The position numbers and the translations under genes are program-made. Shown piece by piece: positions 8,371 to 60,808 of a stretch of DNA of 64,000 bases. The notes under the pieces are model-generated. The model had not been told where the DNA came from. It saw nothing but the letters and a program-made list of their open reading frames with translations, and searched no databases. Origin of the DNA: Phaeosaccion multiseriatum (taxonomy: Eukaryota; Protista; Ochrophyta, other classes). Position 1 is the first letter of the stretch. Each line of letters opens with the position of its first letter. The DNA lies in the NCBI GenBank assembly GCA_965112735.1, contig OZ218951.1, positions 248,001-312,000 of the forward strand, read 5' to 3'.

Positions 8371-8718
8371 GGCCTCTCGCTGCGTGCTCCACACGCTGCC
8401 TGCATCAGGTAAGCCGCATCCCCTTGTCCTCTCTGGCTCCTCCTTTGCCACGACTCTTCGGCCTCCCTCCTCCCTTCCTCCTCCCTCCTCCCTCCTCCCT
8501 GTCCTTCCCCTCCGCTCCTCCTCCCCTCTCCTCCCCCTCCCCCTAGGCCATCCCGTCCGTGAGCAACAGCGTCACTAGCACCTGCACCACCGGGCTTGCA
8601 GTGATGTCAAGACCCGGGCACTCCATCTTGTCGAACAACAATTGGTCCACGCGCTCACGGAGCTCGTTCACAAGCACGGAGATGCGCGCCATGGCGGAGA
8701 AGCAGATCCACCCATCGA
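8371..8718 (-). pseudogene. Duplicated fragment of the DEAH helicase last exon and 3' flank (copy of 36311-36631)
   Basis: Encodes [58 protein letters not shown] count 3 mismatches in the 176-bp coding part versus 36456-36631. It lacks the exon's splice acceptor. Confidence 0.9.
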
Positions 8719-8798: not shown

Positions 8799-11700
8799 TC
8801 AAACTACATCGAATCTATCTACATTCTTGGTCTCTTCAGGCTGATGCACACTCTTCCGCCGGAAAGGCGCTCCTCCTCGGCGAGGGCTGCTTCTCTCTCG
8901 AAGCACATGTCTCCTCGACTCTCCCCTGCCTTTGTTGCAAAGGGTTCGCTCTTCTGCCGGGGTTCCGCCGCTGTCCAGCTCCGTTCCGTGACGCGGCGCA
9001 GTGAGCGCTCGGGAGGACAAGACGTGCTTTCTCAGCGGTATGCCCACCCACGCCACGTCTCCACGCTTTGAATTGGTGACACTTTCACCTCTCATGGCCA
9101 TACTCAGGTCACCAACGTTAGCTCCTGCTTCAACGCGGCATCCAGGCTGCAAGTGAGCCCTTGCTCCGAGCCACGCGTTCTCCTCGACTTGCACAGTCTT
9201 GAAGACGAACCCTCCCGTGCCTTCGATGGTGTGCGCGAAGATTGTGGAGTCTTGCAACACCACCGCTTCGTCTCCAATGACGAGAAGATGCGCATCATAA
9301 GGCCTGAGCCATAAAGATGTGTCCTTGCCAACACTTGCCCCCAGCAGCCGCAGCCACGCCGCGTACACCGGCCCGCCCGCGAAGTACTTGATGCAGAGAG
9401 CCTCAATGAAGGCAGGGGCCATGCTGCCCAAGCGGTATATATCCAACGAAGGCGAATCGAGCGCTATAGGAGGCTGCCCCTCTTTGGCATGCAAGGATGT
9501 GCCCAGAACTCGATGGAAAAGAATGGCTGAGCAAGCGCCCGCCAAGGCCATGAGAACTTGAAAGACGAAGCTCCCCAACACAAGGAAGAACACTCCAGTA
9601 TGGCTCTCGCCCAGTGTATCCCTCGCCACCACTTCTGGAAGGACGAAGGGACAGAAGACGGCAGCCCCATGCACATGGCCATTGCGCAACAGCAGGTCAG
9701 ATACCGACGCGCTGATCAACACCCCCGGACACCAAACGCCGAGGAGCAGCACCACAGTCGCAAGCCCGCCGAGCGCATTGTGCATCCTCGACGGAACAGG
9801 AAGACTGCCTGCTGCATCGACGCCATCCTTCTCAGCAGCAGCACTCATTGGGTTCGGCAATACAAACGGCCTAGGGGCGCCCACTACAGAAGAGTTGCAC
9901 GGTACGTCGTCGTCTCTACTCACAACGGTGCGATCTGCGACCGTGCTTCCGTCCCCAATGCAAGCTCCGCCTAGGAGAAGAGCTTCGTTCGCAACAATGT
10001 TGAAGCGGCCGATTGTGATGCTTTGCGTATCCTCCTCTCCACGACCACCCCCATCAGCGAAAAGGTGCACAGAGCCCGCGAGCTGGGAGTTTTCCCCTAT
10101 CCTGAGCTTCTCCCATATCGTAGTGATAGGAAGGGTAAGAAGTGCGCACCCCCGCTCCAGCCTGGCGCCCATGGCGGAAGCAAAAACACGGTTGAGCCCA
10201 CATTGTGCCACAAAAAGGGAGCCAACTTTGAAGAGAGGACTCTCCTGAAGAACTCCGAGTGACAGCCGTGTGGTGGCGCTTGGGCCCAGCAGCAAGAACA
10301 CACGCTGTAGCGATAGCACTGCCACCATGTACAGCATGCTTCCGATCAGCAGCAGCACGGGGAATGCCAATGCACGAGCGAAGATGGAGACACTCTCCCC
10401 CGCGCCGTCGTCATCACCCCCACCGGCAAGCACAAGTATCCAGAGGGGCAGCAGGTACGACCCCAAGTTGGTCACTGAAAGCAGGGCCAAGGCACAAAGC
10501 TCTTTTCCTATCCGCCGCAGCCCCTGCTCGCGTTCGACCTCTGCCAGCGGGCCAGAGAGTGACGAATGGCCGAGCGACGCGTACGGACCGAGCTCCATCC
10601 CCTCGTCGATGACCAAGTCCTTTGGCTCCTTCTTCAGGCCCTCCCCCCCCTCCTGCGTCTGCCCCCCCTCCCATGGAGACGGACACACGTTGGACAGTAT
10701 GCACACCTTTGCTCCCTTCCCGATCCTCACGCGATGGACATGGAGCATGCCATTTCGAGTAATGACAGACGGGCGAATGACGGCTCCGTACTCGATCACT
10801 GCCCCTTCTCCAATCTCGATCAAGTCATGCTCGTGCAGCAGCCAGCTCTCTAAGCGCGCGCTTCCACTGATTCGTGCCCCCAGCAGGCGGTTCCACACCC
10901 GCAAGGCGAAGGTACCACGGAGAACAGAAATCAGCAGTGCGGCAAGTTTCAGCACATTCTGTACAGCATACCACCGCCAGTAGTACGAGCTCCTCACGGA
11001 CCATCGCCCCGGTCGCATGCGGCCAAGCACAGTCCACTTCACCACTACAATCAGGGCAAGGAACCAGCTTACTGACACGACGACGAGGGGTGGTAGCCAA
11101 GAAAGAATCGTCGTGTTGCCGCGCCCTGCTCTACGTAGCAAGTACACGCCAACGAAGCTGGGAGAAAACCCGCAGCTGAGCACAGCAACAACGAGCAGCC
11201 AACTCAGAACCTGCAGCACCACTTGCTTGCCAGTGCTGAGCCTCCGGTGCGCTTTCATCGCTTCCCCTTCTCCACCGACTGACTCGAAATCGCGCTCCTC
11301 GTCCTTCACTCGGGCTTCGCTTGCTGCCGACGACTCTTGCCCGCTGTCTCCTCGACCTCCGCCCTCCTCCGCGGCACCAAGCACTGAAAGTGCCACAGCG
11401 GTTCGGTTCTGGAAGATCTGCATTACTGTCAGAGCCTGCAGGAGTCACACAGACACAACAGGGTCAGCAACAAGGGCGAGACACAACACGGACGAAAGCT
11501 TTGTGCTCAAAGTCACTCACCTCGAAGCCGGGAACCTCTGCCCGAATACGCGAAACCGCCTGAGCTGCACTCAACGATGTGCCTCCCTCTGCGAACAAGT
11601 CGTCATTGGCCTGCAAGTGAGGCTGCTCCGTGGCCTGCCTCAGGATGCCCAGCACTTGGCGGGCAGTGTCGCCTAACGCCTCGTCACCATCGGACCACTT

Positions 11701-14700
11701 CACAGCGGTTTTGTTTCCCTTCGCTTCCGCCTTGATCATCCTCAGCACCTCTTTCACGTCTCTCTTTCCACTGCTCGTCATCGGTAGAGCATCCACGGCC
11801 ACAGCCGTGCTCGGCACCATGTATGACGGTAGCAGCCTGCTCACTCCTTGCAGCACCATCTCAACTTCGGCACTAGAAGGTGTCAGAGCCGCCACAACCG
11901 TCTCGCGCTCTCTGTCCACCGCTGCCACGGCGCTCCCCACCCCCTCTTGATGGAGCAGCGCAGCCTCCACCTCGCCCAGCTCAATACGATAGCCGCGCAC
12001 CTTGACTTGAGAGTCTCGGCGACCCCTAAACACCAGCGATCCGTCTGCCAGCTGCCGCACCAAGTCACCCTGTCAGAACGTGTTAAGTTTGAGATGCGTC
12101 AGATCAGAACAGTGCAGTAGGGAGCAGAGAAACCTACCTCCACCCTCACCCCCGTCTCTGCTTGTCACTGCATGGCATACCAAAGGCAAGTCAAATGTAC
12201 ACACAAACGCACACACACAAAGCCGCACACCCATGGGCAACCTTTTCGACTTACCGTACGATACACCCTGCGCTGGTCCGCCAAGAAGGGCGCGGGGATG
12301 AAGGCCTTCGACGTGAGCTCTGGGCGATTCAAGTACCCACGCGCCAGCTGTCTCCCCCCAATGCAAAGCTCGCCCTCCACGCCCTGAGGCACCAGCTGCA
12401 GACGCTTGTCCACCACATACACTTGCACGCCGGCTCGAGGCTTGCCGATGACGAACCCACTCGACATGGCACCCGGACTGTACTCATGTGCGGTCGCGAA
12501 AACCGTCGCCTCTGTTGGGCCGTAGCTATTGACAAGGCGAACACTGCGCCTCCACATGTCCACTTGGCCTTCCTTGATCGGCTCCCCAGCCAATGAGATG
12601 GACCGTAAGGTGGCCTCCTTAGCACCATTGGTGATGTCTTGCGGTCGAAGCAGCGACAGCAGTGACGGGGTGCAGTACATGTCTGTTACCCTCAAAGACC
12701 GTATCACCTCCGGCAGGTCGTTCAGCATGGAGCCCTTCGCTGCCAGGCACAGCGTCGCCCCACACGACAACGGCCCAAACAGCGACGCCACAGACACATC
12801 AAATGTCAAAGCAGCACTCAGGAGCACACGAGAAGATGCCGTTATCGTCAGTTCCTCTTCGTAGAGAGTCGCCATGAAGCTGGCCGTGCTTCTGTGCTCA
12901 ATCATCACGCCCTTTGGCCGGCCGGTACTACCGGACGTGTGAATCACGTACGCCATGTTCTCGCCCACGGCGTGGCACACAGGCTCCGCTGTACTCTCCG
13001 CTTGCATCACAGCCACCACGTCCACACAGCTCGCGTCTCCGACACGCCGCGCTAAGCTGGCATCGGCGGTTGCCAGCACCTCAGACTCGCCTACTGCCTT
13101 TGCCGTCGTCAGAACGACGCTCAGCCCGGCGTCTTGTGCGATCATCGACAGCCTATCGTCGGGATGCTCGGGATCCAGGGGCACGTACGCCGCCCCCGCT
13201 TTGAGCACGCCCAGCACTGCCACAACCGCCTCCACGCAGTCCCCAGCAATCAGCACCCCCACCAGGCACTCCGGCCCCACGCCTCTCCCCTGCAGCATGC
13301 ATGCCACCGTATTCGCATGCCCATTCAGCTCCCCGTAGCTCATCACTCGATCTGTCTCATACTCGTGCAGGGCTTCCTGCTCCGGACTGCGAGAGGCCAT
13401 CTCTTCGAAAGCCGCGTGCAGGAGGGGCGGTGGTGGCGATGCTTCCTCTGCACCTCCCTCCTCGTCTCCATTGCCATCCCCCGCCACCAGTGCAGCGCCG
13501 CTCAACGTCTCCACCACCTTCACACGGTCCTCGTGTGCCAAGAGACTCAGCTTCCACACGCTCTCGCCCGGCCTGCCCACTGCACTCTCCAGCAGCGCCA
13601 GGAAGCTCCGCGCCAGGGTCTCCACTGTGGCCTGGTCGAGCACCGCCGTATTGTAGCACAGGCTGCCGTGCATGTCCGACGCACTGTCCGTGCTGCGCAC
13701 AAGGTATAGTTCGATGTCAGTCGTATTATTCTTCCAAGTATCCAAACCCGCCTCCTGTAGTACAAAGAAGGCCTGCAGCGCCTTGCCACCATCATCTCTG
13801 CCGAGCTGGGCCCGCTCAACCACCTTGTGGAACGGTGCCTCGGCATGCTTCATGGCACCCAGATACGCGACCTGTACGCGAAGCAGCACCTCCCGAAAGC
13901 TGGGGCTTCCTCCCAGACCCAGACGGAACGCGAGGATGTTGACGAAGCATCCCAGCACGCCCTCCAAGCCTTGCGCCACGTCTCTTCCGAAGTGCGCAGT
14001 GCCCACCACCACATCCTCCGCTCCGCACACACGAGCCAGCAGCACTTGGAACGCGCCCATGAGCCCCACAAACAGCGTGGCGGAGCTACCCGCGCACAGC
14101 TTACTCAACTTGACCAGCACTGCATTGGGTAGCACCAAGTCCACCTTCCCACTTCCTCCCACACTGATATCTTCATGCACCATTTCTCCACTGAGGCCCT
14201 TTTGGGCATGTCGCTGATGGAGAGGCAGCTGCAGTGGACTGGTACCAGCCAGTTGACCCTGCCAGTATTCAAGCAGCTCCTCAATACGGCCTTCGCCGTC
14301 CAGCCGAGCTCGTTGCCACCTGGAGTAGTCCGCGAAGCTGAAGGGCAGAGCCGGTAGGTCTTGTGCAAAGCCTTGCCCGGCCATGAAAGCCGCGCACACC
14401 GCCTTGAACTCGCCCTGGAAGAGCAAGTAGCTTGCACCATCAAAGATGCAATGATGGAACGTAGATACTGCGGTATAGTGCTCCTCCTCTCCGCTCTGCT
14501 TCGGGACGTGCACGACCAGCGTGCGCCATAGTGGCTGTCTCTGCTCCAAATCGAATGTACGAGCATAATCGGCCTCCATCAGGCTCCGAGCCGCACCAGC
14601 ACTGCTCGCCACGGCTGAAGAGAGAGCAGCAGACACCACCTCGGCCGCCGTAATTCCAAGCTGAACCTGTCTCAGAGAGCCCTGCTTTGTCCACTCAAGC

Positions 14701-17700
14701 GCCGTCCGGAGCACGTCATGTCGCTCCACTATGCTGCCTAACACTTGTGCTATCATGTCCACAATTTCAGCGGATGTTCGTCCGGAGATCAGCGAGAGGG
14801 GCAGCGGCAGCACCGCTGGGAGATTGTACGCGCTCTGCCCGCCAGGGGCAGTCGTCCGCAGTGCTACGTCCGAAAGGTACATGTGCTCCTGCTGGTAAGC
14901 GGCGGGGGCGTCTGTGTCCGAAGAGGACTGCCAGAGGGCCATGGAGCTGCCATTTGCCCCGGCCCCCGTTGTTTGATCGTCTTGCTCATTCAGCGGCCCC
15001 GAGTCGGCTCCCAGCACTTCCTCTTCGACCCACACTGCCAGCGCTGACACCGTTGGATACGAGAAGAGCACATCAGTAGTCACCACAACCCCGAAGCGAG
15101 CCTGTAGCTGGCCGCGCAGCTCCACTGTTGACAAAGAGTCAAGACCTGCTTCCATCAAAGGAGTGTTCTCATCCAGCTCTTCGGCACCCTCCCCAAGGAG
15201 GTCCTTGGCCATATCAAGCACCGCCAATCGCACTGATTGCTGTCTCTCACCAGGGGGCAGTCTCAAGAGCGCCTCGCGCACTTCATTGTTGAGTTTGGTG
15301 TTGCTGGATGCGCCTGCTGCTGTTGAGACAAGCCCTGACAGCAGGGGCGATCTACTGGACACCCCCAAGCTGCCTGCAAACTTGCCCCAGTCCATGCCAG
15401 GCAGGACAGCCACATCACCCACGGACGCTGACGACATCGCAGCGGCATCTAAGGCAGCCATGCCCAGCTCAGCTGACACCGTGCCCACACCCGCGAGCTC
15501 CAACTGCTTTTGAACGATATCGAGCTGGGCGGCCATACCAACGTCAGCCCATGGCCCCCACTGCAATGACGCCCCTGCAAGCCCGAGGTGTCGCCTGTGC
15601 CGCATCAGCCCGTCCACAGCCGCATTCGCCGCAGCGTAGTTTGCCTGTCCAGCGTTGCCCAGTACTCCGGCCATGGATGTGAAGCAAAAGAAAAAGTCAA
15701 GGCCGGGAGAGCGCCCCTCCTCCTTCGCCCAAGCCAGCGAGAGCTCGTGTAAGTTCACCGCCCCCTGCACCTTGGGTCGGAAGACGTTCATCACGCTCTC
15801 CGCCGTCTGCTCTTGCAGCGGCTTATCATCCAGCACCCCGGCAGCATGCACCACACCGCGTACAGGGGGGAGCAGAGGCAGGACGCCCCCCAGGCAAGTC
15901 CGAAGTGCCTCAGCATCAGCAACGTCACAAGTAGGAGTATGGATCAGCTCCACCTTGTTCCGAAGCTGCTGCCACTGTTCCGTCATGCTCTCGGCGATCT
16001 TCCCACTCCTCGACAGCAGCACCAGGTGACGAGCGCCCCTCGACGCGAGGTGCTGGGCCGTCACGAGGCCGAGAGCTCCCAGACCGCCGCTGATGACGTA
16101 CGTGCCATCGGACACCACTGGCACACCATACGAGGGGTTGGTCAGCACCACCTTGCCGATGTGCTTCGCTTGGCTCATGTATACCATGGCCTTCTGAGTA
16201 TCCTCCCTCATGTCAAAGGGTATCGTCGGTAGGGGCTTCACATTGCCTGACATGCAGTCTTCAGCAAGACGCTGCAGCCCACCACTGATCCAGCCCGGCT
16301 GAGCTACGAAGTCAGACTCAATCATGCTATCCAGTGCCAGTAGCTCGTACCTCACATCGGATCGGGCGGTGCGCATCTGCTCGTGACTCCACACGCCTCG
16401 CTTGCCAATCTCGACGAATATACCGCCCTCACTCAGCATGTCCAATGAGAAGGGAATGTAGTCTTCACTCAGACAGTTGAGCACCACGTCCACCTTCACC
16501 TCACCCATGGACTGCTTGAACGCCTCTGCGTCTCGCGATGACGCAATGTGCTCCACTCCCAAGCTCCGGAGGAAGTCATGCTTCACAGCAGCGCCGGCAG
16601 TGGCGTACACCTCTGCGCCGACCCGCTGAGCATACTGTACGGCAGCAAGGCCCACACCGCCAGACGCGGCGTGAATAAGAACCTTCTCTCCAGCCTTGAG
16701 GCCCTCAAGGGCCTTTATCACGGTGAGGAACACGGTGGGAAGTGCAGCGGCCTGCTCGAAGCTCAGCACGGCCGGCATCACGGCCAGACACGCGTCCTCC
16801 GTCACCAGATGGCTGCGCAAACATCCTCCGTCCGCGAAGCCATATACATTATCACCGACACGGAAGCGCGAGCTGCCTCCTGTTCTGATCACCTCCCCGG
16901 CGAACTCGGAACAAGGGTCTCCAGGGTCGCCAGGATACATGTCCAGCACATTCAGCACGTCCCAGAAGTTGAGCCCCACGGCCCTCACCGCCACCTCTAC
17001 GGAGCTGCCAGCTGCTGGGTCGAGGGACGGATGCTTACCAACGCTCGTATCGTCACGCAGGGCGAAAGCGCTCACAATGCTGCCTCTTGCCTTCAAGTCA
17101 AGCGCGAAGGGTAGCTGCAGGGGTTGATGTACAAGCTGAGGTGTCCAGCATTGCCCATCGCGTACCCACACATCTTCTGTGGAGGCAGGGAAGGCCAAGC
17201 CCAAGGCAACCTCGCTGTCTTCGACCTTCTTGTCGCTCAGGTCCACCACACCGATCTGCATGGAGGGGTGCTCCATCCTCGCAGTCCGCACCAGCCCAGT
17301 CACCCAGCTGTGACACCAGTCCTCGCCGCTTTGGACGCCTCTCGTCAAAACCGTCAGCGGCACACTCGACGCAGTGGACAGGCTCCTGAGTAGAGCCATC
17401 AGAGCGTAGGCCGCTCGAGCAAGCTGGCCCTCTTCTGCGTCTCCTTCGCCATCCCTGGGGATCAGCACGTACAAGATTCGAGTCCACTCGTCCTCTTCAA
17501 GAAGAGCACCGTCGTCCCAAGAGCCGCCCACCCGTCCGTATCGAGGGTGCACGTCCACGCCCTCCGGAACAGAGCGTCGCACTGCCGCAATGATCTCAGG
17601 CTCACTCTCCCTCTGGTCCTGTGCACTAATCACGAGCCACTTCTGCTGCACCGCCTCACTATCATGATGAGGTCGCTGTGGAGGTACGGCTGACTCCGTG

Positions 17701-20700
17701 GGCTTCCACTCCAGCGTGTACATCGCTCGACGAAGCGGATTGGAGCGAGCGAAGCCTCTCGCTCGCTGAGCGCGGAATGCACGCATCTCCACCAGAACCT
17801 GCTTACTCTCGAAATCGGCAATCTTGATGTCAAACTTGATGCTGTTGCCCCCGGGTTCCACTTCAGCGAGCGTCGTGTGCACCCACACCTTTGCTCCTGT
17901 GATGACACTGAGGACGACAGTCTCGTCGAAACCAACGGGCAAGAATGGAGCTCCGCCTCTTTCTTCCAGCAGCTGGTGTGGGATTGCGTGTAGGATGGAG
18001 TGAGTCGCATTGTCGAGCACAGCAGGGTGCAGAGCAAAGTCCGTCGCCTCCCAAGGCTCGCAGAGCTCCGAGTCGAGAGCACGCACGACCGATAGCACCT
18101 CTCCGTCATTGGCGAACATCTGTAAATTCCGCTCAAAGCGAGGACCATAGTTGAAGTTGGCATCCGCCATTGCCTTGTACAGGCCACGGGCCAAGTCCAC
18201 CGTCCCTACGCGCTCTTTGATTCCCTCTACATCGAGCGTGTCACGCGGCTCGGCTCGATCTGTGATGGACACATAGTCCATCCTCGCGGTTATTCCCTTG
18301 TCGCCCGTGGCACCTCCGAAAAACTGCATGCTTCCATCTCTCGCGTACAAAGCACTCAAGCCGTCACAGACAATAGTACTGCGACTCTGCGCTTCGTCCG
18401 TGTTGATGTCCAGGAAACCCTCAATCTCCAAGGGAGCCACAAAGTTGGCTCCCTGTAGGAGTACTTGCTGCTCCACCCCGAGCTGTCTTCCTCCTAGAGC
18501 AGCGACGACGCCCACTTCAATGTACGTCACCCCCGGAATGATCACCACATTGTTGACGGCATGGTCCTTGAGAAGGCCCTTGAGGTGAGGAGAGAAGGGG
18601 CTGGCGAGCCGCATTCTGTCTCCCTCTTGGGACAGCTCGCCACTCGGCAAGAATGCCCGTGGAAGCCTGAACCAGCGAAACGCTCGGCGTGTGGGGTACA
18701 AAGCGTCACGTTCTGACTCTTTGTCCTTGTCAAGATCATGACTGACGCTGACGCCCTCTCCGTCAACACGCGTGGCAGTACTCTCAGCTCTGGGACCGGA
18801 TAGCACGGCGTGAGCATTGGTTCCACCGGAGCCAAAAGAGCTCACGGCAGCAACGAGTGCTCCTGTGTAGCCGCCTCGACCCACTGGCACCATGGTCGCA
18901 GGCAAAGTCACAGGGACGCCGGCGAGCTCCAGCTCGGGGTTGCTGTCCTTCAAATGCAGGTTCGGAGGGGCGACGCGGTGCTGCAGCACCAGTACGGTCT
19001 TGATGAGGCCTGCAACACCTGCGGCGCCCTCCAGGTGTCCGATGTTGGTCTTCACCGCACCTACCACCAACGCGTTTCCCGCGCCGCGCTCCAATCCACA
19101 GTACACGGCCTTGACGGCGCTCATCTCGATGGGGTCTCCCAGCGCCGTTCCCGTGCCGTGCGCCTCCACGAAGCCCACCTCTGCGGGGTCTCTTCCCGCC
19201 TCTGCCAGCGCGGCAGACAGGAGCTGCTGCTGAGCAAGAGGACTGGGTGCCGTCAGACGAGCGCTGGCCCCATTGTGGTTGACCGCACAGCCCTCGATCA
19301 CCGCTAGCACAGTGTCCCCGCTGGCCATAGCATCATCAAAACGCTTCAGCACAATGGCACCACATCCTTCGCCTCTGACATAGCCATTGGCCGCTGCGTC
19401 AAACGTTTTGCAGCGCCTGCGACAAGGCCAAGAAAGATAGGAGAGGGGAAGGGAGTGGGGCATGGCAGGGAAGTTCTTGTTGGGTCAGTAGAGAAGACGC
19501 CCAAGAATGAACTGCAAGAGCGGCAATTGGGTAAATATATAATAGCACTCAGACCAGAGCGGCGGGTGCAACTTACCAGTCGGGGGAGAGGAATGTCCCC
19601 GCAAACAATGACTGAAAGGTGCTCTTCCCGAGCAGCAGGTTCACGCCACCGACCACCGCAGAGTCGCACTTGCCCAGGCGGAGGTTGCTGCAAGCAGCGT
19701 CCAGAGCCACCAGGGACGACGAGCATGCTGTCTGCAGCAACGCACTGGGGCCGCAGAGACCCAGCGTGTAGGACACGCGATTAGCAATGTTCGAAGCCGT
19801 CAGGCCCATTCCGCCGTAGGCGCTCTGAGCAGCGGCATCTCCTGCCACGAAGCCCCAGTCCGTGTCCGACAAGCCCACGAATACGCCGGTGTTGCTGCCC
19901 CGCAGGCTGCTCTTGCTGTGGCCCGCGCGATGGAGGGCCTCGAAGGCCACCTCCAGCATGAGGCGCTGATTGGGGTCCATTGCCTCTGCCTCCGCAGCAC
20001 TGATGCCAAAGAAGGCATTGTCGAACATCTCCACGCCCTCAATGAACCCTCCCTGCAGCTCCGGCTCGCCCGCCTTGCTGTCCCATCTGTCGCGTGGTGC
20101 TGCTGTGATGCAGTCTCTGCCCTTGCACAGCAACGACCAGAACTGCTCCGGGCTGTTGGCTCCGCCGGGGAAGCGACACGCCATACTCACTACAGCGATG
20201 GGGGCTCGAGAGTCTAAGGACGAGGGCCGATTTGCCGGAAGCACCCGCTCACGCTCAGCATCACCCGGCGCCTCAAGAATCTGGGCCTCGAGCCACACGG
20301 CCATTGCAGACACCGATGGATACGAGAAGAAGGCACCGTTCGAAACGGTGACACCACACCAGGCCTTGATTCGATTGCGAAACTCCACGGACGCCATCGA
20401 ATCGAGCCCGGCTTCCATCAAGGGCATCCCTGCTGCCAAGGTGAAATCCTCGCCAACACACTCGACTGCCATACCCGTCAGGACTTGCTCGATCCTCTCC
20501 CGCCGTGCTGACTCCGGCAAGTGCAGGAGCTCCTCCCGCACCTCGGCATTGACGCTGTAGCCCTTTGCCGCCTCACCACTTTCTCCGCGGTCCGTCAACT
20601 GCCGGAGGAAAGCGCTGTGCACAGGGTCCAAGCTCGCTCGAAATCTGCCCCACCTCATGGCCGGCATGACAGCCACTTCCTGCACGTTGGTATGCGTCTG

Positions 20701-23700
20701 GCTTGCAAGGACGGCATCCAGAGCCTTCATACCTAGCGCCGATGAGATCAGGCCCACTCCGGCCATCTCCGCAGCTTTCGACACCATCTCAAGCCGCACC
20801 GCCATACCCACGTCGCCCCATGGGCCCCACTGAACGTTGGAAGCAGGAAGGCCAAGCTGGTGTCGGCGATACCGCATCAGCCCGTCCAACGCAGCGTTTG
20901 CCCCGGCATAGGCGCTCTGATTGGACAAGCCAAGCAAAGCGGAGGTCGATGAGTACGATGCGAAGAAGTCGATCTCCTCCCTGCCGCTCGCCGCCCACTC
21001 AAGGCACAACGCGTGGAGATTCCAACCTCCCTTGACCTTGGCGGCAAAGACATTTCGCACGTTCTCTTCCGTCTCGCCCGACAACATTCTCTTTGCGCCA
21101 TTCACCCCCGCTGCGTGAACCACACCCCGAACATGAGGCAGGCCCACTAAAGCGCTGGCTACAGCATCTCGAAGCTGGCTCATGTCGGACACATCGCAGG
21201 TCACGGCCACAGCGGTGACACTCTCCATGCTCTGCAGGGCCTGCCACAGCTCTGAAACTTCTTCCGCCGCCCGGCCGCTTCGAGACAGGAGGAGCAAGTG
21301 TCGAGCGCCCTGGGAGACCAAGTGATTCGCCGTCACCAGCCCCAGCCCCCCCAGACCACCGCTGATCAGGTAGGTCCCATCCTCCCTGCACGTGAAGCGA
21401 TCGACTCCTTCCGATGTCAGATGGAGTGTGCTGGGCACCAGCCTCGGAGCGAGGATCTCACACTCTCGAACCAGCAGGTCCACGCCTCGGCCGCCGTCGC
21501 GGGCTCCTGCAGCCAGCGTCACAGCCTGGGAGATAGCTTGGGCTTCCATCTTCTCTACTCTAGGTCGAGCATCCTCAGACTGTGGATACATGGCATACTC
21601 AAGGTCGATGTGGTTCACATCGAGGTCGCCCCGCTCCAGGCGTACGCTTCTCACCAGTCCTACGGTCCAGCTGTCCTGCCAACCAGCACCGCTGTACACA
21701 CCCGTTGTCACCACCATGATGGGCATCACTGCCGCGTCCCCGTCTAAGCTCTGTACAGTTTGCACAAAGTGGATTGCCCCATCGGTAGCAGAGCCCGTCG
21801 CTGACGTCAAGTAGAAGAGATGGGCCCCATGGAGCTGCGCGTCTGAACCGACCGCCTCCATCACGTGCACCTCTACACCACTTGCTGTCGCCGCGCTTCG
21901 GACAGCTTCCAAGGATCTGTGGTTGCTCGATGCGTGCTGCCCTTCGGCTGCCTGGGGAATCACGACGAGCCACGGAAGGCGGCCGGTCAGCGAAGCCTGC
22001 TGCGAAGCCGTGGGCACCTCCACCGCCTCCCACTCAACAACATAGAGCGGGCCCTGCTCAGCTTCACTCCGCGGCTGAGGTGCTGCCGTGGCTCGCGCTG
22101 TGTACCAAGGAAAGGCTTTGCGCGTTGGGAACAGGATATGCTCCTTGCCCTTACTCTCTGACTGCTGTACTGTGCTCAGACCTGCTCCAAACGACTCCTC
22201 GGAGCTCTTCCCGCGCGTGAGAGAAGATATCCACACCAGGCCCTCGCGACGCTCGCACTTGGCTCCCATACTGCTCAGCACAGGGTTGGGGCCCACCTCA
22301 ACGATGCTCAGGTCAGCCCCCCTCCCGTCTCCCATCCAGTGCTCCACCAGCGTGTGGATGCCTTCTGCGAACAGCACTGGCGACAGCATGTGTTGCACCC
22401 AATACTTCGCCTGCGTCACCTCCTCCGCTCTCACCACCTCACCCGTCACGTTGGACACCAGGGGTATGCGTGGGGCGCTGAATGACACCTGCCTCAGAAC
22501 CTCCTCCAGCGCACGTACAGCGGGCTCCATGAGAGGAGAGTGGAAGGCGTGCGACACCTCCAGGGCCTTGCAGCCCACCCCATCCGCCGTGAGCTTCTCC
22601 ACCACCTTGTCCACAGCGCTGCGAGCTCCAGAGATCACGCTCGCGCTCGGTCCATTCGACGACGCCAGCACCACCGCGTCTGCCCCCCCTGCAGCGTCGA
22701 TGCTTGCCAAAGTCGCCTCCTTGCCTGCCCTCACTGCGAACATCACTCCTTTGCCCTCGGGGCAGGTCTGCATGGCGGCTCCTCTCTTGGCGGACAGCAT
22801 CAGCCCGTCCTCCAGCGACATGACGCCGGCCACGCACGCCGCCACCACCTCGCCCAGGCTGTGGCCCATCACCATCGAGGGCTCCACGCCCTCCGACTTC
22901 CACAGCTCACACAGGGCGTACTCCAGCACAAACAGGCACGGCTGGCAGTAGCGCGTCTCCTTCAGCAGCGCTTGTGCAGTCTCCTCCTCCTCCTCTCCCT
23001 CCCCGTCCTCAGCAGCGGCAGGGTACATGAGCTCCACCACAGACTTGTCCAGCCAAGCTCGCTCCATGAGCAGCGTACTGCACCGCTGCACGCACTCGCG
23101 GAACACGCCCTCCTTCTCGTACAGCTCTCTGCCCATGCCCACGTACTGCGAGCCCTGTCCAGTGAACAAGAACGTCACCGATGAACGCTTCTTGCTTTGC
23201 TGTCCATCCAGCTGCGGCAAGACCTCACCCCTCTCAACCAACGTTGGTCCTAAGCTGCTGAGCACCACATGGGCGTTGGTGCCTCCAAATCCGAAGGAGC
23301 TCACCCCGACCAGCACAGATCCATCGGAGTTGGTGGGTAAAGGGGTCATGGAAGATGGGAACAGGACTGCAATTCCCTCCATGTCGAGCTCTGGGTTTTG
23401 CTCGATGAAGTGGAGATTGGGTGGAGCGGTCTTGTGCTGCGCCACCAGGACGGCTTTGATGAGTCCGGCAATCCCTGCCGCTCCCTCCAAGTGCCCGATG
23501 TTTGTCTTGAGCGCCCCTACGATCAAAGGCTTCGCTTCATCGCGGTCGTGGGCGAACACTCCTCTGAGAGCGCTCATCTCGATGGGGTCGCCGAGAGACG
23601 TGCCCGTGCCGTGAGCCTCGACGAAACTGACGTCGTTTGGAGATAGCCCGGCGTCGATCAAGGCGTCTGTGATGAGCTGCTTTTGAGCACCAGGGTTTGG

Positions 23701-26700
23701 AGCCGTCATCCGCGCGGTGGGCCCATTATGGTTCACAGCCGAGCCTCGCAGGACAGCCAGCACCTCATCGTCGTTGGCAAGGGCGTCGTCTAGGCGCTTC
23801 ACCACGATTGCTCCGCACCCCTCGCCTCTGACGTAGCCGTTGGCGGCCTTGTCAAATGTTTTACAGTGCCTTGAGAGTGAGGACGGAAGGGGGAAATAGG
23901 GAAGATTTAGCTAAGAAGGCGGGAGGAGAAAGGGGCGATTTAAGGGGCGATTTAAGGTTCTCAGGTTCTCACTCTACCTCCCTGAACGAAACAGTGGTGC
24001 ATGACCAGGTGCCTACCGACTACCTTATCGGGCCTTCACCTGCAGAGCATCATACTCACTAACTTCCTCCCTCCCCTCCCTCCCTCCCTCTCCTCCCTCC
24101 CGCCCCTCCCTCCCTCCCTCCCTCTCCTCCTTCCTTCCTCCCTGCCCCGCCCCCCTCTCTCCTCCTCCCTCACGCACACTCAAGCACTCACCCGTCTGGC
24201 GAGAGAAACCCTCCTGAGGAAAGGAGCTTGAAGGGCGCCTCGCTGAGAAGCAGGTTCACTCCACCGACCACAGCTGTGTCACACTTGCCCAATCGAAGGC
24301 TGCTGCAGGCGTTGTCCAGGGCGACCAAGGAAGAGGAGCACGCCGTGTCTACTGTTGAGCTCGGCCCCTTCAACCCCAGCGCGTAGGAAACTCGGTTGGC
24401 CAAATTCGACATGGAGGCTCCTGACGCCGCGTACACGCCCTCGCTCGCCTCGCCAGCTCCTTGGCTTGCTTTGGCCTGCAGCCAATCGCTTCCAGCGCAG
24501 CCGATGAAGACCCCTGTCTCGCTCTTACGGAGACTGCTCTTGTCACAGCCTGCCCTGTGCAGCGCCTCGAAGGCCACCTCCAGCAGCACGCGCTGGTTGG
24601 GGTCCATGCTTTCCGCTTCCGCTGACGAAATGCCGAAGAAGGTGTTGTCGAAGAGGTGGACGCCCTCTATGAAGCCTCCTCGCCACTCCTTCGAGCCGCC
24701 TCCCCACCTGTCTGCTGGAGCTGTAGAGATGCAGTCCGATCCCGTGCAAAGCATGCTCCAGAAACCTTGGGGCGAAGTCACTCCTCCTGGAAAGCGGCAC
24801 GCCATGCCCACCACCGCCAGCGGAGCTCGCATGCCTTGAGGCGAAGCCGAGGTGGGGCGCAAACCTCGCATTGGGTCTGTGGTAGCCCTTCCCATTACCT
24901 CGCCATCAAGCCAGCCCACAAGCTCCGCCACGCTGGGATACTCAAACAGCACATCGGCGGTGGCTGTAACCCCCAAGTCAGTTTGAAGGCGATTCCGCAC
25001 CTCCACGAGTGCCATCGAATCCAGGCCTGCCTCCATCAAGGGCACATTGTCGTCCAGCGGGGGCATGTCTGCATCAACGCACTTCAGCACGGTCGCCTTG
25101 AGCGCTTCCAGGAGAGCAACGCGTCGATCCTCTGGGGAGAGAGCAGAGAGAGTCTCGCGCAGCTGTGCGAGGGCGTCTCCAGCTGGGGGAGGAGCAGACG
25201 CAGCACCCTCGTAATCATGTGCTGGTGTTGCCCTCTTCGGGAGGGGAAACTCTCGCGACGAGGGGAATCCCTGCCAAGGGGTGCCCACTCTCTCTGCTGC
25301 GCCTTTGGGCCTCATGCCGCCATAGCTGCCCAAGATGACGTGGGCGTTGAAGCCGCCAACGCCGTAGGAATTCACCCCTGCGAGCAGCGTCGAGCCGTCG
25401 GAGCAGTAGGAGGAGAGAGGCGTCCTTCGGGTGGGCAGCGTGACGGGCACGCCCTCCAGCTTCAGGTTGGGGTTGACCTCCTTCAGGTGTAGGTTGGCTG
25501 GGGCCTCTCGCTGTTGTACTACCAAGATGGCCTTGATGAGCTGAGCCATCCCTGACGCCCCTTCCATGTGGCCTAGAGTAGTCTTGACAGTGCCCACTAC
25601 AAGGGGGGAGGCATCAGGCCTGTTGGGGGTGAACGCTGCCTTGAGAGCGCCTAATGAGTATCACGCGACGTGCGTTCGTGCGTGCGTGCATGAGGGACGG
25701 AGAGAGAGAAGGAGGGAGAGAGGGAGGGAGGGAGGGAGGGAGGGAGGGAGGGAGAGTAGAAGGGAGGGAGGGAGGGAGGGAGGGAGGGAGGGAGGGAAGG
25801 AGGGAGGGAGGGAGGGAGGGAGGGAGGGAGGGAGGGAGGGAGGGAGGGAGGGAGGGAGGGAGGGAGGGAGGGAGGGAGGGAGGGAGGGAGGGAGGGAGGG
25901 AGAGAGGGAGAGGGAGGAAGGAAAGAATGGAAGGAGGGAGGAGGGAGGGAGGGAGGGACGAGGGGAGGGCACGAATAAGCGTTGTTTACTATGTCTCATC
26001 ACAGCATCATTTGTCTAGTTGAGACGTAAGAGAGACATCACAATGATGGTCCAACACGAATGCCCCTCTTTTAACCCCTTTGCCTCCTTCAACGTACCCA
26101 GCTCGATGGTGTCGCCCATGACCGTTCCCGTGGCGTGAGCCTCAACGTAGCCCACTTCTCTCCCCTCGCACCCTGCCTGCCGCAGGGCGCTCCTCGCCAA
26201 GCTCTCTTGGGCGGCTCCCTTGGGGGCGGACAGAGAAGTGCTGACGCCATTGTGGCTGACAGCCGCTGCCTTGATGACGGCAAGGATGTTGTCTCCGTCC
26301 TTGATGGCGTCCGGCAGGGACTTTAGCACGACGGCCCCGCTGCCCTCACTGCGCACGTAGCCGTCCCCGGCCGCGTCAAAGGATTTGCAGTACCTGGAGA
26401 ACGAGACGGGACACAGGAAGCAGAGTTGGGGGGGGGGATGGATCAGTGTCCAAGCAAGGGACCAGAGAGAAGAGAAAGGGCGCTTTGGAAGGAAGAAAAT
26501 AGATGCAGAGCTGCAGGAGCACACTCACCCTTCCTTCGACAGAAGCCCCGCACTGGCTAGGCCGCCAAAGCCTTGGTCATGGAGCAGCAGGTTGACCCCG
26601 CCAACGACGGCAGAGCTGCACTGCCTCAGTTTCAGACTGTTGCACGCGTTGCTGAGGGCCACTAGGGCCGACGAACATGCTGCGTCTACGCTTTCGCATG

Positions 26701-29700
26701 GACCTACGAGGCCGAGTGTGTGCGAAATGCGGCCAGCGAAACATGCTCGGCTTGCCCCTGCCAACGTGTAGGCGCTGAGAGAAACGCCATCCGCGCTCTC
26801 ACGCAGCAAAGCGGGCCAGTCACTCCCTGCAGCGCCCACAAACACGCCAACTCGGTGACCTTCAAGCCTGCGTCGGCCCTCGTAGCCGGCTCTGTGCAGA
26901 GCCTCGTACGCAACTTCGAGCATGATGCGCTGGTTGGGATCTTGGGCCTCCGCCTCGGCGGTGGACATGCCGAAGAATGCGTTGTCGAACGCTTCAACAC
27001 CGTCGATGAAGCCACCTGTCGCATGACGGGGAGAGGAGGAGCGTCCAAAATGGGGTGAGCGGGGCACAGAGACGGGCAAAGAAGCGCCCAGCAAGCTTCC
27101 ATGCCCTCTACGAGTAACATTTGCAAGCCTCGTGGACACAGGGTAGAAACGCACCTCTCACTCCTGTTCCCAAGTCTCGCTCAAGGGGTGCATCGGTGAC
27201 GCAGTCCTCCTCATTGCACAGCTTCGCCCAGAGCTCTTCCGGGCTGTTGCAGCCACCGGGGAACCGACAGGCCATCCCAATGACTGCAATGTCGCCGCTG
27301 CTACCGTCAGAAGAAGGGACCCCAGGAATGGAGCGAGGCAGTCCGTCAACGGAAGCGTCGTCCTCCTCCTCTTCTTCTCCAAACAGGACCGTCTCCAGGT
27401 GAGCTGCGAGTAGAGCTGGTGTCGGATAGTCAAAGAGGGCGTCGGCCCCAATCTCAGAATCCTTGTCGCTCCCGTCTTCAGTCTTCTCGCTGCCCAGAAA
27501 GTCCTCGAGCATCACCGCCAGCTCGGCCATCATCACCGAGGTCATGCCCGCCTCCATGAAGCGGTCGTCGGCGGTCAAATCTCCATTATGCGTGACCTCT
27601 ACGGCAAACTCGAGGAGCTTCTCCAAGATGATGGCCACCCTTGCCTCCCTACCGAGGCCCTCCATAGCACGCATGGCCAGACCGTCTTCTCCTCCTCCTC
27701 TCCCCTCCGGGACACCGCCTTCGACGAAGCAAGCCCTTTCCTCTGGAGCTGAGCACACGCTGGCAAGGTTCACAGGAGGAGAGTCCTGTCGGTGTGGGTT
27801 GGGGGAGAAATGGACACGACAAGTGGGGTGAGACTCGACGCAAAGCCCTCAGCAGACGATTCCCTCACACAACGGCACGGATGAAAAGGGCTGTGAAGGG
27901 CAAGTACCAAAGCACACAGATTGAAGGGGGCAAAGGATTAGAGAGATGGGCAAGAGGCCTCCACTCCCGCTCACTCGCACCTGTGACATCGCAGTGCGGT
28001 CCTCGATGAGCTCGTGCACCATGTGCAGCTCGCCAGCGTGAAGCGCCTGTCTCGTCGCCCGCCGTCGGATCTTGCCGCTCGTGGTCTTGGGGATGGTCCT
28101 CTGCTTGATGGCCACCACCTTCGCCGCTCTGAGACCCAAGGAGGACGACAAGGCGGCCTGAGCGGCCTCCACCACTGCCTGGGCCTCGCCCTCTCGCTCT
28201 TGGCGGATCTCGAACACCACCTCCAGCACACCGTCCCCTCCCGTCTCGTCGGAGGAGAAGGCCGCAATGCAGCCCTGCCGAACGGCGCTGGAGGCCTCTT
28301 GCACAGCGAACTCGATGTCCTGCGGGTAGTGGTTGACCCCATTGAAGATGATGAGGTCCTTGATGCGGCCGCAGATGTACAGCAAACCCTCCTCCACAAA
28401 GCCCACGTCGCCTGTCCGTAGGTACTGGCGAGGAGGCAAGCTGTCACTGCCCCCAGCCCCACCCTGGAGAGAGAGCTTCGCCTGGAACACCTCCTTCAAC
28501 AGCTCGGGCTTGCCCCAGTACCCGGCGGCGACAGAGGGAGAGGAGACCCAGACCTCTCCCGTGGCTCCTGCTTCGCCGACCTCGGCCATGGTGTCGGGAT
28601 TGACAATTCGAATGTCCATAAAGTCTGCCCTCTCGCTCGGGGAGCCGACGCTGGTGAGGTCGGGGCGAGAAGGCGATCGATCGAGGACAGTGGTCCAGGA
28701 GACTGGGGAAAGTGTGCAATGGGGTGGGGAAGGCGAGAGAACGAGCGAATTAGTCGTTGGACCGATTCCTACACTGAGAGAGAATGAAATGCACCACTGC
28801 CTGCTGTCCCTTCGCCTCCACCCGGCCCCCCTTCTGTGCAGACTTCTTACCTAGAACCACGTGCTCAGCGAGCCCGTACGCAGCCGAGAACCACCTTACA
28901 GTGCACAAGTCACAGAGAGGCACGTACAAGGGAGAGGTATGAGGTTAAAAACCACTCACCGGCCGAAAAAAGGGGGGAGCACGGAGGATGTCGTGACAGG
29001 TCTCTCGAGCTCAAGCGCAGTCATAGCTCCTGCCGCACACTCACTCACCCCTGCCGGAGGCCGAAAGGCAGGAAGGCCCCTTCGAACCTCTCCACCGTCT
29101 CCGCTCGGATTGGCTCGGCTCCCGACTGCAGTCTGACCACGTGGGACAGATCCAGCTTGGGCTCCTTGCGAGTGCCGCGCACCTTGGCCATGTAGCGGGC
29201 GCAGAGGGCGTAGGCGAAGTCGGGGGCGACAGACCACTCCACGCGGTGTCGAGAGATGAGCTCCAGCCAGAGCAGGGGCCGCTTGATGAAGCTCACGGGG
29301 GACATGTAGTGCATAGTCATGCCCGTCAGGAAGGGGGTGAGGAGGCCGAGTACGAGGCCCATGTCCTGAGAAGCAAGGAGAAAGTAAGCAGGGTAGTGAG
29401 TGGGGCGCGAGTGAGCAACAGCAAAAGGCAAGACGAGGCGAAATGGAGAGCAGAGGCAGGGGTGTCCGGCCGCACATCGTTTCTCCCCTTCCTCACGCTT
29501 GCTTGGCGCTTCGTTCCTGGCCGTCCGTTTCCACATTTCTCCTCCCTTCATCTGTCCTGCCTCTGCTTCCTCGCTCCCTCGCTCGCTCACCTTCCCCCCA
29601 CTATATACAAGTCAACTCACATGATACTGGGGCAACCACGAGAAGCCCGTGGTTGGCACATTATGGATCCGCTCACTTGGTGCAGCCCTCTGGGTACGAC

Positions 29701-30696
29701 CGCTGCTGCTCGCCTCAGGCTGGTCTGATGGGGAGTCTCCAGCCTTGTGCGAGGGCCACAAGCGGTACATCCCCGTGGCGGGGTGGCAGCCGATGAGATA
29801 CACATTGGCCATGAGCGCTCCGAAGGTTACCATGACGCCCTTGGGGTCACCGGTGGAACCGCTGGTGTACTGCAGAAACGCCAGGTCCTCTTTGGCCACG
29901 CTCAGCTCGTCAAAGCTCCTCCTCCCTGCGCCTGACGAGGAGGAGAAGAAGAAGCTCAGAAGCAAACCCCCATCCGTAGCCTTAAAGTCGAGGTCCGCAG
30001 GCCACAGCTTGCGCGAGTCAGAGAGTGGATTGGACCTGTCCACTCTGCGCACAGCTGCTATCGTGGAGTCGGTGAGGCACAGCACGGGCTTACAGTCCGC
30101 CACGATCTTGCTCATCTTGGGCAGTGACTTGGACAGGGGAGGAGCAGGCGGGTACACCATCACCGCCACCACGCCCGCTCTCAGGCAGCCCAGGAAGGCG
30201 GCGAAGAAATGCAGGCCCGGCCCGTAGCACAGCACCACCATGCTGCCCTTGGGCACGCCCCACTCCTCGCGCAGCATGTAGGCAATCTTGCCCGCCTGAG
30301 GAAGGGTTGGGAGAAGAACGTTTGCATCTTGGGTTAATTATCACAAAGTGTCTAGTAGGAGTACCGGGGGGGGTTAAGGTGCAAGACTACAGCACGCCAG
30401 CAGCAGCTGAATCGGCGTGAGAAAGCAAGCAAGGGCATCAACATCTCCACGGAACGTCTGACCTCCACGGAATGTTTGTTCGTTGCTTTGCTTACCTCAT
30501 CCCACATGCGTCTGAAGCTGTACCTCTCCGCCTCTTTGCCCTTGCCATCGTACCAGAAGGCAAAGGGCTTGTCGCCGAGGTCAGCAACAACCTCATGAGC
30601 CCTCCTCAGTAGAGGAGCGAGAGAAGAAGAGGCCGCGACTCCCTCGATTCCGCCTCGTTGTCTCCCTGGAGACGTCACGGTTTCTTGTTCCTCCAT
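8799..30696 (-). CDS. Hybrid FAAL-PKS-NRPS megasynthase with Pls-like membrane terminal domain (~6,490 aa, 13 exons)
   Basis: Exons 30496-30696, 29621-30295, 29049-29365, 28851-28894, 27981-28702, 27155-27785, 26529-27015, 26098-26393, 24192-25650, 19577-23869, 12255-19416, 11521-12069 and 8799-11435. All are GT-AG and phase-compatible; total 19,473 nt = 6,491 codons. Splicing restores the split motifs WLPQYH|DMGL, YRT|GDLVR and SPDG|HCKTFD. The start ATG is uncertain. Confidence 0.92.
9030..11230 (-). other. Pls-like terminal domain: paired TM segments alternating with three left-handed beta-helix acyltransferase-like repeats
   Basis: Three repeats start [17 protein letters not shown] and LLGASVGKD, each followed by hexapeptide I/V-x-I-G strings ([44 protein letters not shown]). 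Hydrophobic helices lie between them, plus the motif [20 protein letters not shown]. Confidence 0.8.
11390..14900 (-). other. NRPS module: C-A-PCP
   Basis: [11 protein letters not shown]; [84 protein letters not shown]; [17 protein letters not shown]. Confidence 0.92.
15020..20205 (-). other. PKS module 3: KS-DH-ER-KR-ACP (no AT)
   Basis: [25 protein letters not shown]; [16 protein letters not shown] and HPAVLD; [12 protein letters not shown]; [30 protein letters not shown]; [17 protein letters not shown]. Confidence 0.9.
20280..24825 (-). other. PKS module 2: KS-AT(malonyl-type)-KR-ACP
   Basis: [28 protein letters not shown]; [23 protein letters not shown]; [22 protein letters not shown]; [16 protein letters not shown]. 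Confidence 0.9.
24900..27295 (-). other. PKS module 1: KS-ACP (no AT, no reductive domains)
   Basis: [40 protein letters not shown]; a short linker leads directly to [20 protein letters not shown]. Confidence 0.88.
27981..30620 (-). other. Fatty acyl-AMP ligase (FAAL)-type loading domain; ACP1 follows at ~27390-27640
   Basis: [68 protein letters not shown]; ACP1 [14 protein letters not shown]. Confidence 0.88.
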
Positions 30697-60300: not shown

Positions 60301-60808
60301 AGCCAAACCGACCAAAGCAAAGCCCAAGACGGGTCGTATCACTCGTGTGTACGTGCAAGGAGGAGGGGCGGAGGTGCCCGCGGCGGTGGAGGGGGACAGG
60401 AGGGTGTTCAAGATGTGGACGGCGGAGGAGGACGCGCTGCTGTTGGGTGGGGTGACTCGTCACGGGGCCAGCAACTGGACTGCCATCCGGGTGAGCACGG
60501 GTCTGACGCGTAACAGCGCTCAGATGAACCAGCGCTACGCACGTTTGTTGAGGAAGATTAAGGCGCAGGGGGAGGAGGATCAAGCCGCCGACGCCAATGG
60601 CAGCAACAGCAACAAGGGAGACAGGGCAGGGGAAGGGGTAGGGGCGGGGCTGAGCAAGGCGCAGCAGGTGGCGATGCAACGGGAGCATCAGCAGCAGCAG
60701 CCGAAGGAGCAGCCGCAGCCGAGGAAGCGGGACCGAGACCGAGACAGAGACCGAGACAGAGACCGAGACAAACCGCCGCGAAGGTCGTACAAGAAGAAGC
60801 AGGGCTAG
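52598..60808 (+). CDS. Enhancer of polycomb-like (EPL1/EPC) chromatin protein with polyQ tracts and a C-terminal Myb/SANT domain
   Basis: EPL1 motifs RPIDVDKKL.V, YDLDSEDEAFV, FELLMGRLERE, VYMHWKGKR...PLLR, LRRDLDKARLLLDVVKKREKLKRE; Myb WTAEEDALLLGGVTRHGASNWTAI...RNSAQMNQRY. Exons ~52598-53616, 53859-55734, 55935-56157, 56293-57944 and 58247-60808 (possible extra intron ~58706-58882). Confidence 0.82.

Follow-up and report, generated by a model that had tools for sequence, protein, structure and literature searches.

The closest described systems to the gene considered here are Pls of Streptomyces albulus, PosA of Acinetobacter baumannii and the fungal ε-polylysine synthetase of Epichloe, in which an adenylation (A) domain is followed by a carrier and then by a terminal domain (PMC10522769, PMC7179176). 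The end of PosA comprises approximately 730 residues, with six helices in three pairs and three packed β-helices in an arrangement of approximate three-fold symmetry, and the homologous end domain of Pls has been stated to be required for polymerization (PMC10522769). Here we analyze a gene on the minus strand of a 64,000-nucleotide stretch of the Phaeosaccion multiseriatum assembly GCA_965112735.1 (contig OZ218951.1, positions 248,001 to 312,000; hereafter the window, to whose numbering all positions refer). Like Pls and PosA, its product has an end of this approximately 730-residue pattern, with six helices in three pairs and three β-helix units, and contains no thioesterase. Unlike them, it places this end behind a fatty acyl-AMP ligase (FAAL), three polyketide synthase (PKS) modules and a canonical condensation (C) domain of nonribosomal peptide synthetase (NRPS) type, and the gene is eukaryotic and split by introns, falls outside the classic group in a tree of end domains and has changed conserved residues.

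Release from assembly lines is known to occur via thioesterase, reductase or terminal condensation domains, and to our knowledge the Pls/PosA membrane domain has been studied only as a polymerase of cationic amino acids. In the window, as in a few protist genes that have yet to be studied, a domain of Pls/PosA type closes a fatty-acid-primed PKS or PKS-NRPS line. The literature that we searched held no enzyme in which such a domain closes a PKS or PKS-NRPS line, and nothing on the family model TIGR02353 or on polylysine synthetase together with PKS and algae; an earlier note on this DNA had known of no characterized enzyme with the full architecture, and this stands for the literature searched, with the addition that uncharacterized eukaryotic relatives share the C-terminal half. 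We propose, with a confidence somewhat better than even that applies to the explanation as a whole, that the locus is one nuclear gene for a membrane-anchored, FAAL-primed hybrid PKS-NRPS, whose product would leave by a single acyl transfer carried out by the Pls/PosA-type end domain.

Scanned with Pfam, the open segments that lie on the minus strand from 8.8 to 30.3 kb showed assembly-line domains in consecutive order, with E-values down to 1e-74, and NCBIfam NRPS models added the C-terminal part of the A domain and the peptidyl carrier protein (PCP) at 11467–12063. With acyl carrier protein (ACP), ketosynthase (KS), acyltransferase (AT), ketoreductase (KR), dehydratase (DH) and enoylreductase (ER) domains, the complete order reads FAAL-ACP-KS-ACP-KS-AT-KR-ACP-KS-DH-ER-KR-ACP-C-A-PCP, followed by a last exon of 878 residues; it is the order that the earlier note had read from the letters, and every part of that reading accessible to computational checks was borne out. 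The FAAL-ACP-KS front is 40–43% identical (40% over 865 columns) to that of P0095, a protein from a metagenome contig with eukaryote-like neighbors whose order is FAAL-ACP-KS-AT-KR-ACP-end. The domains, all on the minus strand, are as follows.

28020–30633, minus: FAAL-type loader, exons 1–5 (Pfam AMP-binding and AMP-dom_DIP2-like; NCBIfam fatty acyl-AMP ligases)
27396–27620, minus: ACP0, the loading carrier, with its serine in GMTS, which aligns with the GLDS serine of P0095 (Pfam PP-binding)
25484–27293, minus: KS1, spliced, with no AT or reductive domain ahead of the next carrier (Pfam ketoacyl-synt, Ketoacyl-synt_C; Cys/His/His intact)
24908–25096, minus: ACP1, GLDSM (Pfam PP-binding; motif)
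23407–24823, minus: KS2, spliced (Pfam; DTACSS, HGTGT, NIGH)
22273–23175, minus: AT, the only one in the protein (Pfam Acyl_transf_1, E 6e-51; GHSLG, HAFH)
20815–21378, minus: KR of module 2, lacking an LDD motif (Pfam KR, E 2e-52)
20299–20436, minus: ACP2, GLDSM (Pfam PP-binding; motif)
18951–20202, minus: KS3, spliced (Pfam; triad intact)
17757–18623, minus: DH, with its His and an LHPAVLD motif (Pfam PKS_DH_N, PS-DH)
16143–16658, minus: ER, the Pfam-matched part, with GGVG (Pfam ADH_zinc_N, ADH_zinc_N_2)
15543–16106, minus: KR of module 3, with an LDD motif (Pfam KR, E 2e-58)
15036–15221, minus: ACP3, GLDSL (Pfam PP-binding; motif)
13524–14837, minus: C domain, HHCIFDG (Pfam Condensation, E 9e-49)
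11760–13409, minus: amino-acid A domain, with intron 11 inside YRT|GD (Pfam AMP-binding, E 1e-74; TIGR01733 at 322 bits, above its cut-off)
11521–11700, minus: PCP, with its serine in GGTSL at about 11575–11577 (NCBIfam NRPS models; motif)

The catalytic motifs that the earlier note had called intact were all recovered. Each of the three KS domains retains its Cys/His/His triad, the GHSLG and HAFH motifs of the AT are of malonyl type, the DH keeps its catalytic His and Pro, and both KR domains possess an NADPH motif and the YAxAN tyrosine motif. The protein thus has the make-up of a modular type I PKS, with three intact KS domains, four ACPs and an AT in module 2 only; modules 1 and 3 are without an AT because only about 100 residues separate the KS from the next domain. 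It also has that of a hybrid PKS-NRPS, with the HHCIFDG-bearing C domain placed after a PKS carrier, core motifs A3, A5, A7, A8 and A10 (SGKRD) in the A domain and the GGTSL serine in the PCP, and all five carrier serines (GMTS, GLDSM, GLDSM, GLDSL and GGTSL) are present. The loader was likewise borne out as a FAAL: the top NCBIfam models for its C-terminal half are PRK12476 and PRK05850 (157 and 150 bits), the long-chain acyl-CoA ligase models listed reach at most 76 bits except for PRK07768 at 108, and ACP0 lies in the same frame. Neither Pfam nor NCBIfam scans detected a thioesterase or reductase domain in any part of the frame.

These domains are joined in a gene model that was built by listing the in-frame GT..AG pairs between successive open segments and choosing among them by mutual alignment of the three KS domains and by alignment of the front end to P0095. 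The model is a single open frame of 6,514 codons with no internal stop, running from an ATG at 30696 to a stop codon at 8799–8801, and its 12 introns, of 82–447 nt, are all GT..AG; the earlier description of 13 exons encoding one protein of about 6,490 residues between the same ends was thereby closely reproduced.

8799–30696, minus: whole gene, 13 exons, 12 GT..AG introns, 6,514 codons
30496–30696, 29621–30295, 29049–29365, 28851–28894 and 27975–28768, minus (plus-strand coordinates): exons 1–5
27155–27785, 26529–27015, 26098–26393, 24192–25650 and 19577–23869, minus (plus-strand coordinates): exons 6–10
12255–19416, 11521–12069 and 8799–11435, minus (plus-strand coordinates): exons 11–13, the last including the stop

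Motifs run continuously across the exon junctions (WLPQYH|DMGL, GDTIELG|ALK and VYRT|GDL, and SxxG|xCKxFD in all three KS domains). Placing the end of intron 8 at 25651 and the start of exon 9 at 25650 restores the stretch after GDTIELG that is common to all KS domains. The FAAL core motif YGLAE is carried by a 44-nt micro-exon (28851–28894, minus), which is easily overlooked and without which the loader seems broken. An upstream ATG at 30945 was considered as the start and rejected, since similarity to P0095 begins 22 residues past the putative start at 30696. The region has a G+C content of approximately 60%, a marked negative GC skew over 8–24 kb and a chain of long minus-strand open segments.

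The last exon was matched in Pfam by hexapeptide repeats (Hexapep) only, and its best NCBIfam family was TIGR02353, the Pls/PosA terminal domain (E 1e-38, in three stretches). Six strongly hydrophobic stretches stand out in the hydropathy profile; they form three pairs, and after each pair comes a soluble stretch with hexapeptide repeats. This is the layout of the Pls/PosA pattern, in which a soluble unit of about 180 residues follows every helix pair (PMC10522769), and three left-handed β-helices are predicted, one for each pair of membrane helices. In an AlphaFold2 model built on an alignment of 64 relatives (predicted template modeling score 0.81, mean predicted local distance difference test score, pLDDT, 75), the unit of helix pair plus β-helix is repeated three times, and the parts of low confidence are the N-terminal linker, two loops and an Arg-rich tail.

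10671–11234, minus: end-domain unit 1, helices at last-exon residues 68–100 and 108–140 and β-helix 1 (hydropathy; AlphaFold2 pLDDT about 90; the best TIGR02353 stretch)
9855–10499, minus: end-domain unit 2, helices 313–337 and 345–386 and β-helix 2, the most diverged unit (hydropathy, AlphaFold2, conserved columns)
9021–9785, minus: end-domain unit 3, helices 551–583 and 611–645 and β-helix 3, with the near-invariant His735 at window positions 9231–9233 (hydropathy, AlphaFold2, alignment)
8802–9020, minus: Arg-rich C-terminal tail, predicted to be disordered (pLDDT below 40, residues 809–878)

When this model was compared by Foldseek with the Swiss-Prot models, PosA ranked first: its residues 618–1330 matched query residues 65–805 with an E-value of 6e-23 and a TM-score of 0.57 by query, both structures being predictions. 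The fold of the whole end domain is common to many clusters of the AlphaFold database. A search of the Protein Data Bank (PDB) by fold returned acyltransferases with a single β-helix only, e.g. serine and maltose acetyltransferases, and by sequence the end domain had no match among PDB structures. Because an even number of spans lies between the PCP and each of the three β-helices, all three are expected on the same side of the membrane as the PCP, and the helix bundle should be available as a path for the product or for an acceptor.

Among representatives of 1.84 billion protein clusters, the end domain has 1,101 relatives, none of them a near copy (best identity 34%), and most are some 1,300 residues long with an A domain preceding it, which is the classic Pls/PosA layout. 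Word-indexed homologue searches with the end domains of the Chrysoparadoxa frame and of P0095 gave 5 and 2 hits. An end-domain tree with 80 rows contains a branch, supported at 99% in the Shimodaira-Hasegawa-like approximate likelihood ratio test (SH-aLRT), that parts 62 rows, all of them A-only proteins or fragments, from 18 rows that contain the window and every PKS- or FAAL-fused protein on the tree; the branches are long and the details of the tree are unsure. Within the smaller group the window falls with a protein of Chrysoparadoxa australica (P0008) and a metagenome protein (P0011), with 97% support. The members that were looked up derive from Chrysoparadoxa, Stygiella, Phalansterium, a chytrid, Cymbomonas, a dinoflagellate and an MMETSP transcriptome; the others are metagenomic, one of their clusters bearing names of bacterial metagenome-assembled genomes.

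PKS modules joined to this kind of end domain occur in Chrysoparadoxa, in Stygiella and in P0095, none of which has been studied, and their end domains are 21–28% identical to that of the window. The most informative is Chrysoparadoxa CAM9397790.1 (P0008, locus L001), which has the same C-terminal half, colinear with the last 2,300 residues of the window protein at about 35% identity (35.5% over 2,322 columns from the ER to the end domain, across the junction between PCP and end domain). Its locus holds an uninterrupted frame of 3,195 codons, DH-ER-KR-ACP-C-A-PCP-end, that reaches the contig end, by which the record is cut. Since Chrysoparadoxa carries the same fusion in an uninterrupted frame, the joining of PCP and end domain is real. 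The annotated Chrysoparadoxa protein of 2,459 residues is itself a truncation, in that the frame (L001 1–9588, CAXMZZ020000274.1) runs 736 codons further upstream through the ER and DH, so that the full gene is longer and probably also a PKS-NRPS. In Stygiella incarcerata (P0081) a transcript encodes (FAAL)-KS-AT-KR-ACP-KS-DH-ER-KR-ACP-end in one open reading frame (ORF); there, as in P0095, a PKS is combined with the end domain, C-A-PCP is missing and the end domain directly follows an ACP. For the 150 best representatives, an A, FAAL or PKS domain precedes the end domain in 103 of 153 proteins. Free-standing end domains are not in evidence among them, the remainder that were looked up being partial records or carrier-bearing.

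End domains are also fused in other ways (P0011, P0116 and P0033/P0146), with two amine-oxidase domains plus carriers or with a FAAL plus catalase, and some of the fused A domains lack the Asp that binds the α-amine (HVAKLGGCHK), in clusters with fragments named α-hydroxy-acid oxidase. It seems that the end domain accepts many different non-cationic acyl donors.

What the A domain of the window activates bears directly on how the line might end. Motif mapping gave the specificity code DVAYSASVFK, with Ala at position 3. The extraction was checked on classic relatives, which gave DAESIGTVVK and DMEHNGTVSK/TK, and DMEHNGTVSK agrees with the residues published for PosA (Asp217, Met218, Glu221, His260, Asn280, Thr304, Val312 and Ser313; PMC10522769). 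Glu at position 3, described as the hallmark of polylysine- and polyornithine-type enzymes (PMC12042044), occurs in 65 of 79 relatives, and the window code is without this hallmark of cationic homo-poly-amino-acid synthetases. The retained Asp (position 1) and Lys (position 10) indicate that the substrate is an α-amino acid, and the code as a whole suggests a non-cationic one. We know of no code with which DVAYSASVFK agrees; naming the substrate from the nearest solved A domains, LgrA module 2 and TycA, was considered and rejected, as both are too distant, and a homologue search with the C-A region was dominated by multi-module bacterial NRPSs. The window thus departs from the classic family in its curated family score, in its A-domain code and in not having the stand-alone, C-less A-T-terminal layout of Pls and PosA (T, carrier), a C domain and 13 further domains lying upstream, and it shares fold and topology with that family.

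These features bear on a reading in which the end domain would act iteratively, as in Pls and PosA, joining units via the 5-hydroxyl or an amino-acid side chain into a polyester, a poly(lipo-amino acid) or an oligomer with an acyl cap, which would be extruded at the membrane. The agreement of the whole-domain fold with the polymerase PosA, the shared A-PCP-end order, the retention of the near-invariant histidine and of most unit-1 motifs, and the free hydroxyl on the colinear product all point in this direction. However, the C domain would block the α-amine, the position-3 Glu of diamino-acid binders is absent from the code, and acidic and polar residues conserved across the classic polymerases (the E, S and D of unit 2 and the Q, D and R that surround the histidine) have been lost both in the window and in the eukaryote-rich group, in which the unit-3 histidine itself is almost always kept. 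The 99% branch furthermore sets the 62 classic rows apart from the group of the window, and we consider iterative polymerization improbable.

For the single transfer that we favor, the domain order, intact motifs and predicted fold were read from the sequence, and the steps follow established assembly-line logic. The FAAL would adenylate a fatty acid and load it on ACP0, and the sole malonyl-type AT would supply all three PKS modules. KS1 would extend the chain once and leave the keto group, module 2, with a KR only, would leave a hydroxyl, and module 3, with DH, ER and KR, would carry out full reduction, such that a 5-hydroxy-7-oxo-acyl chain would sit on ACP3. The C domain would couple this chain to the α-amine of the amino acid held on the PCP, and the colinear product of the earlier note, a 5-hydroxy-7-oxo-acyl-amino acid, does follow as a prediction from the reductive domains present. 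The frame has no thioesterase or reductase, and the end domain, with three β-helices on a six-helix membrane base, lies where a release domain would be expected and would provide the release step. Most likely it would move the acyl-aminoacyl group off the PCP thioester in a single transfer, onto a hydroxyl or amine of a membrane acceptor, and the conserved unit-3 histidine would probably act as the base; single transfer is ranked above polymerization because the C domain blocks the α-amine and the features of a cationic monomer are absent.

Several observations weigh against this explanation. The sequence does not single out a particular acceptor, amino acid or fatty acid, and the modules without an AT could be skipped or served in trans, so that the colinear product is a prediction only. 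A search for RNA data gave only public runs of unspecified kind under the same organism label, all from one sample; between 8700 and 14600 they cover both introns at exon-like depth without splice joints, and so behave like DNA and are uninformative on expression. In these 5.9 kb the runs differ from the window at 104 positions (approximately 1.8%), and one run contig lacks 110 nt (12104–12215) in the TG-rich intron 11, an indel that is the sole joint seen; both point to another strain or haplotype. The variants themselves speak in favor of the explanation, as they point to constraint: among the 40 listed of the 104, 21 are synonymous and 19 non-synonymous, when 25% synonymous would be expected (binomial p 2e-4; pN/pS approximately 0.31). 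The last exon alone gives 10:10 (p 0.015), and under a transition-biased neutral expectation its signal is not significant (p 0.09).

The lack of RNA data leaves room for a reading in which the locus is not one working gene, being either a silent or decaying copy or at least two transcription units, e.g. a PKS-NRPS ending at the PCP and a membrane protein starting from the ATG at 11423. Retention of intron 12 would indeed bring a stop at 11464–11466 just after the PCP exon, with that ATG following. Against this reading stand 19.5 kb of coding sequence free of stops and frameshifts, canonical splice sites at 12 of 12 introns, intact catalytic motifs throughout, an excess of synonymous variants among those listed, the colinearity of the PCP/end junction with the uninterrupted Chrysoparadoxa frame and the absence of any hint of free-standing end domains in the 150 best representatives. 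We regard this reading as very unlikely.

The end domain itself supplies further points against the transfer that we favor. Its TIGR02353 score of 132.9 bits is far below the curated cut-off of 423.1, and of approximately 75 columns that at least 85% of relatives conserve, it differs at about 35, mostly in unit 2. The earlier description of a Pls-type end holds for the layout of six helices and three β-helices and for the fold; the A domain is not of the Pls/PosA substrate type. With nearly half of the highly conserved columns changed, unit 2 worst and E714D, D716H and K641H near the unit-3 motif, the domain might be devoid of transfer catalysis and act as an anchor in the membrane or a conduit for export, the chain being released by water or by a separate enzyme. 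About 40 of the columns are nonetheless kept, including K133, W134, G138, G143, R154 and D204 in unit 1 (with them the K-W-G-G-R motif) and H735, E738 and E784 in unit 3. The confidently predicted fold, the enrichment of the listed last-exon variants in synonymous changes, the want of another release domain in the frame and the preservation of the fusion by relatives from several eukaryotic lineages also speak against a mere anchor or conduit, which we consider unlikely.

The front of the putative synthase has more familiar counterparts. Apicomplexan megasynthases, e.g. CpFAS1 and CpPKS1 of Cryptosporidium, place a loader and an ACP before their KS modules. FAAL-primed bacterial lipopeptide and PKS lines likewise have a FAAL and ACP loader ahead of the KS and a hand-over from ACP to C-A-PCP (PMC11837247). 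In contrast to the window protein, both the bacterial and the apicomplexan lines end in a thioesterase or reductase rather than in a membrane domain with three β-helices. The ‘PKS-Clade II’ of Nannochloropsis has been described as AMP-PPT-KAS-AT-KAR with transmembrane helices among the features drawn, and it was proposed, from expression data only, to extend C14–18 fatty acids incompletely into hydroxy fatty acids destined for long-chain diols (Balzano et al. 2019, PMC6872974). By that description it has the layout of P0095, with a single module and no NRPS part, and we take it as a lead only. Long-chain diols are in use as a palaeotemperature proxy, and related enzymes with a single module have been put forward as the source of their hydroxy fatty acid precursors.

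If lipid transfer to a membrane acceptor is the true end of this line, it would represent a new release logic and lead to an unrecognized class of algal lipo-amino acids or wall lipids; with three PKS modules and one NRPS module, the line is compact enough for a lipidomics search for the predicted product. A bolder suggestion is that eukaryotic lipid assembly lines generally use the Pls-type domain as a machine for off-loading at the membrane; in the present case it would couple synthesis to export, hydroxy-oxo lipo-amino-acid units being attached to or polymerized into an extracellular or wall polymer (e.g. algaenan-like). Were this improbable extension correct, the domain would add a third route of chain release to those that run through thioesterases and reductases.

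Each of the three KS domains is interrupted by an intron at an equivalent codon and in the same phase (26394–26528, 23870–24191 and 19417–19576), between SxxG/W and xCKxFD, and the three domains are mutually 52–64% identical; together, the shared position and this identity suggest that the modules arose through internal duplication following intron gain. Long microsatellites of the (CCCT)n type (GAGG or CCTC on the plus strand) fill introns 8 and 9 (25692–25969 and 24066–24171), and a further array of this type lies just past the stop of the gene (8462–8541). Pfam scans of the long ORFs elsewhere in the window made no tailoring or transport genes evident beside the synthase. The long ORFs in 31–58 kb are without a Pfam match, and those beyond them, at 58082–60808 (plus) and 61650–62738 (minus), carry a Myb-like DNA-binding domain and ankyrin repeats.

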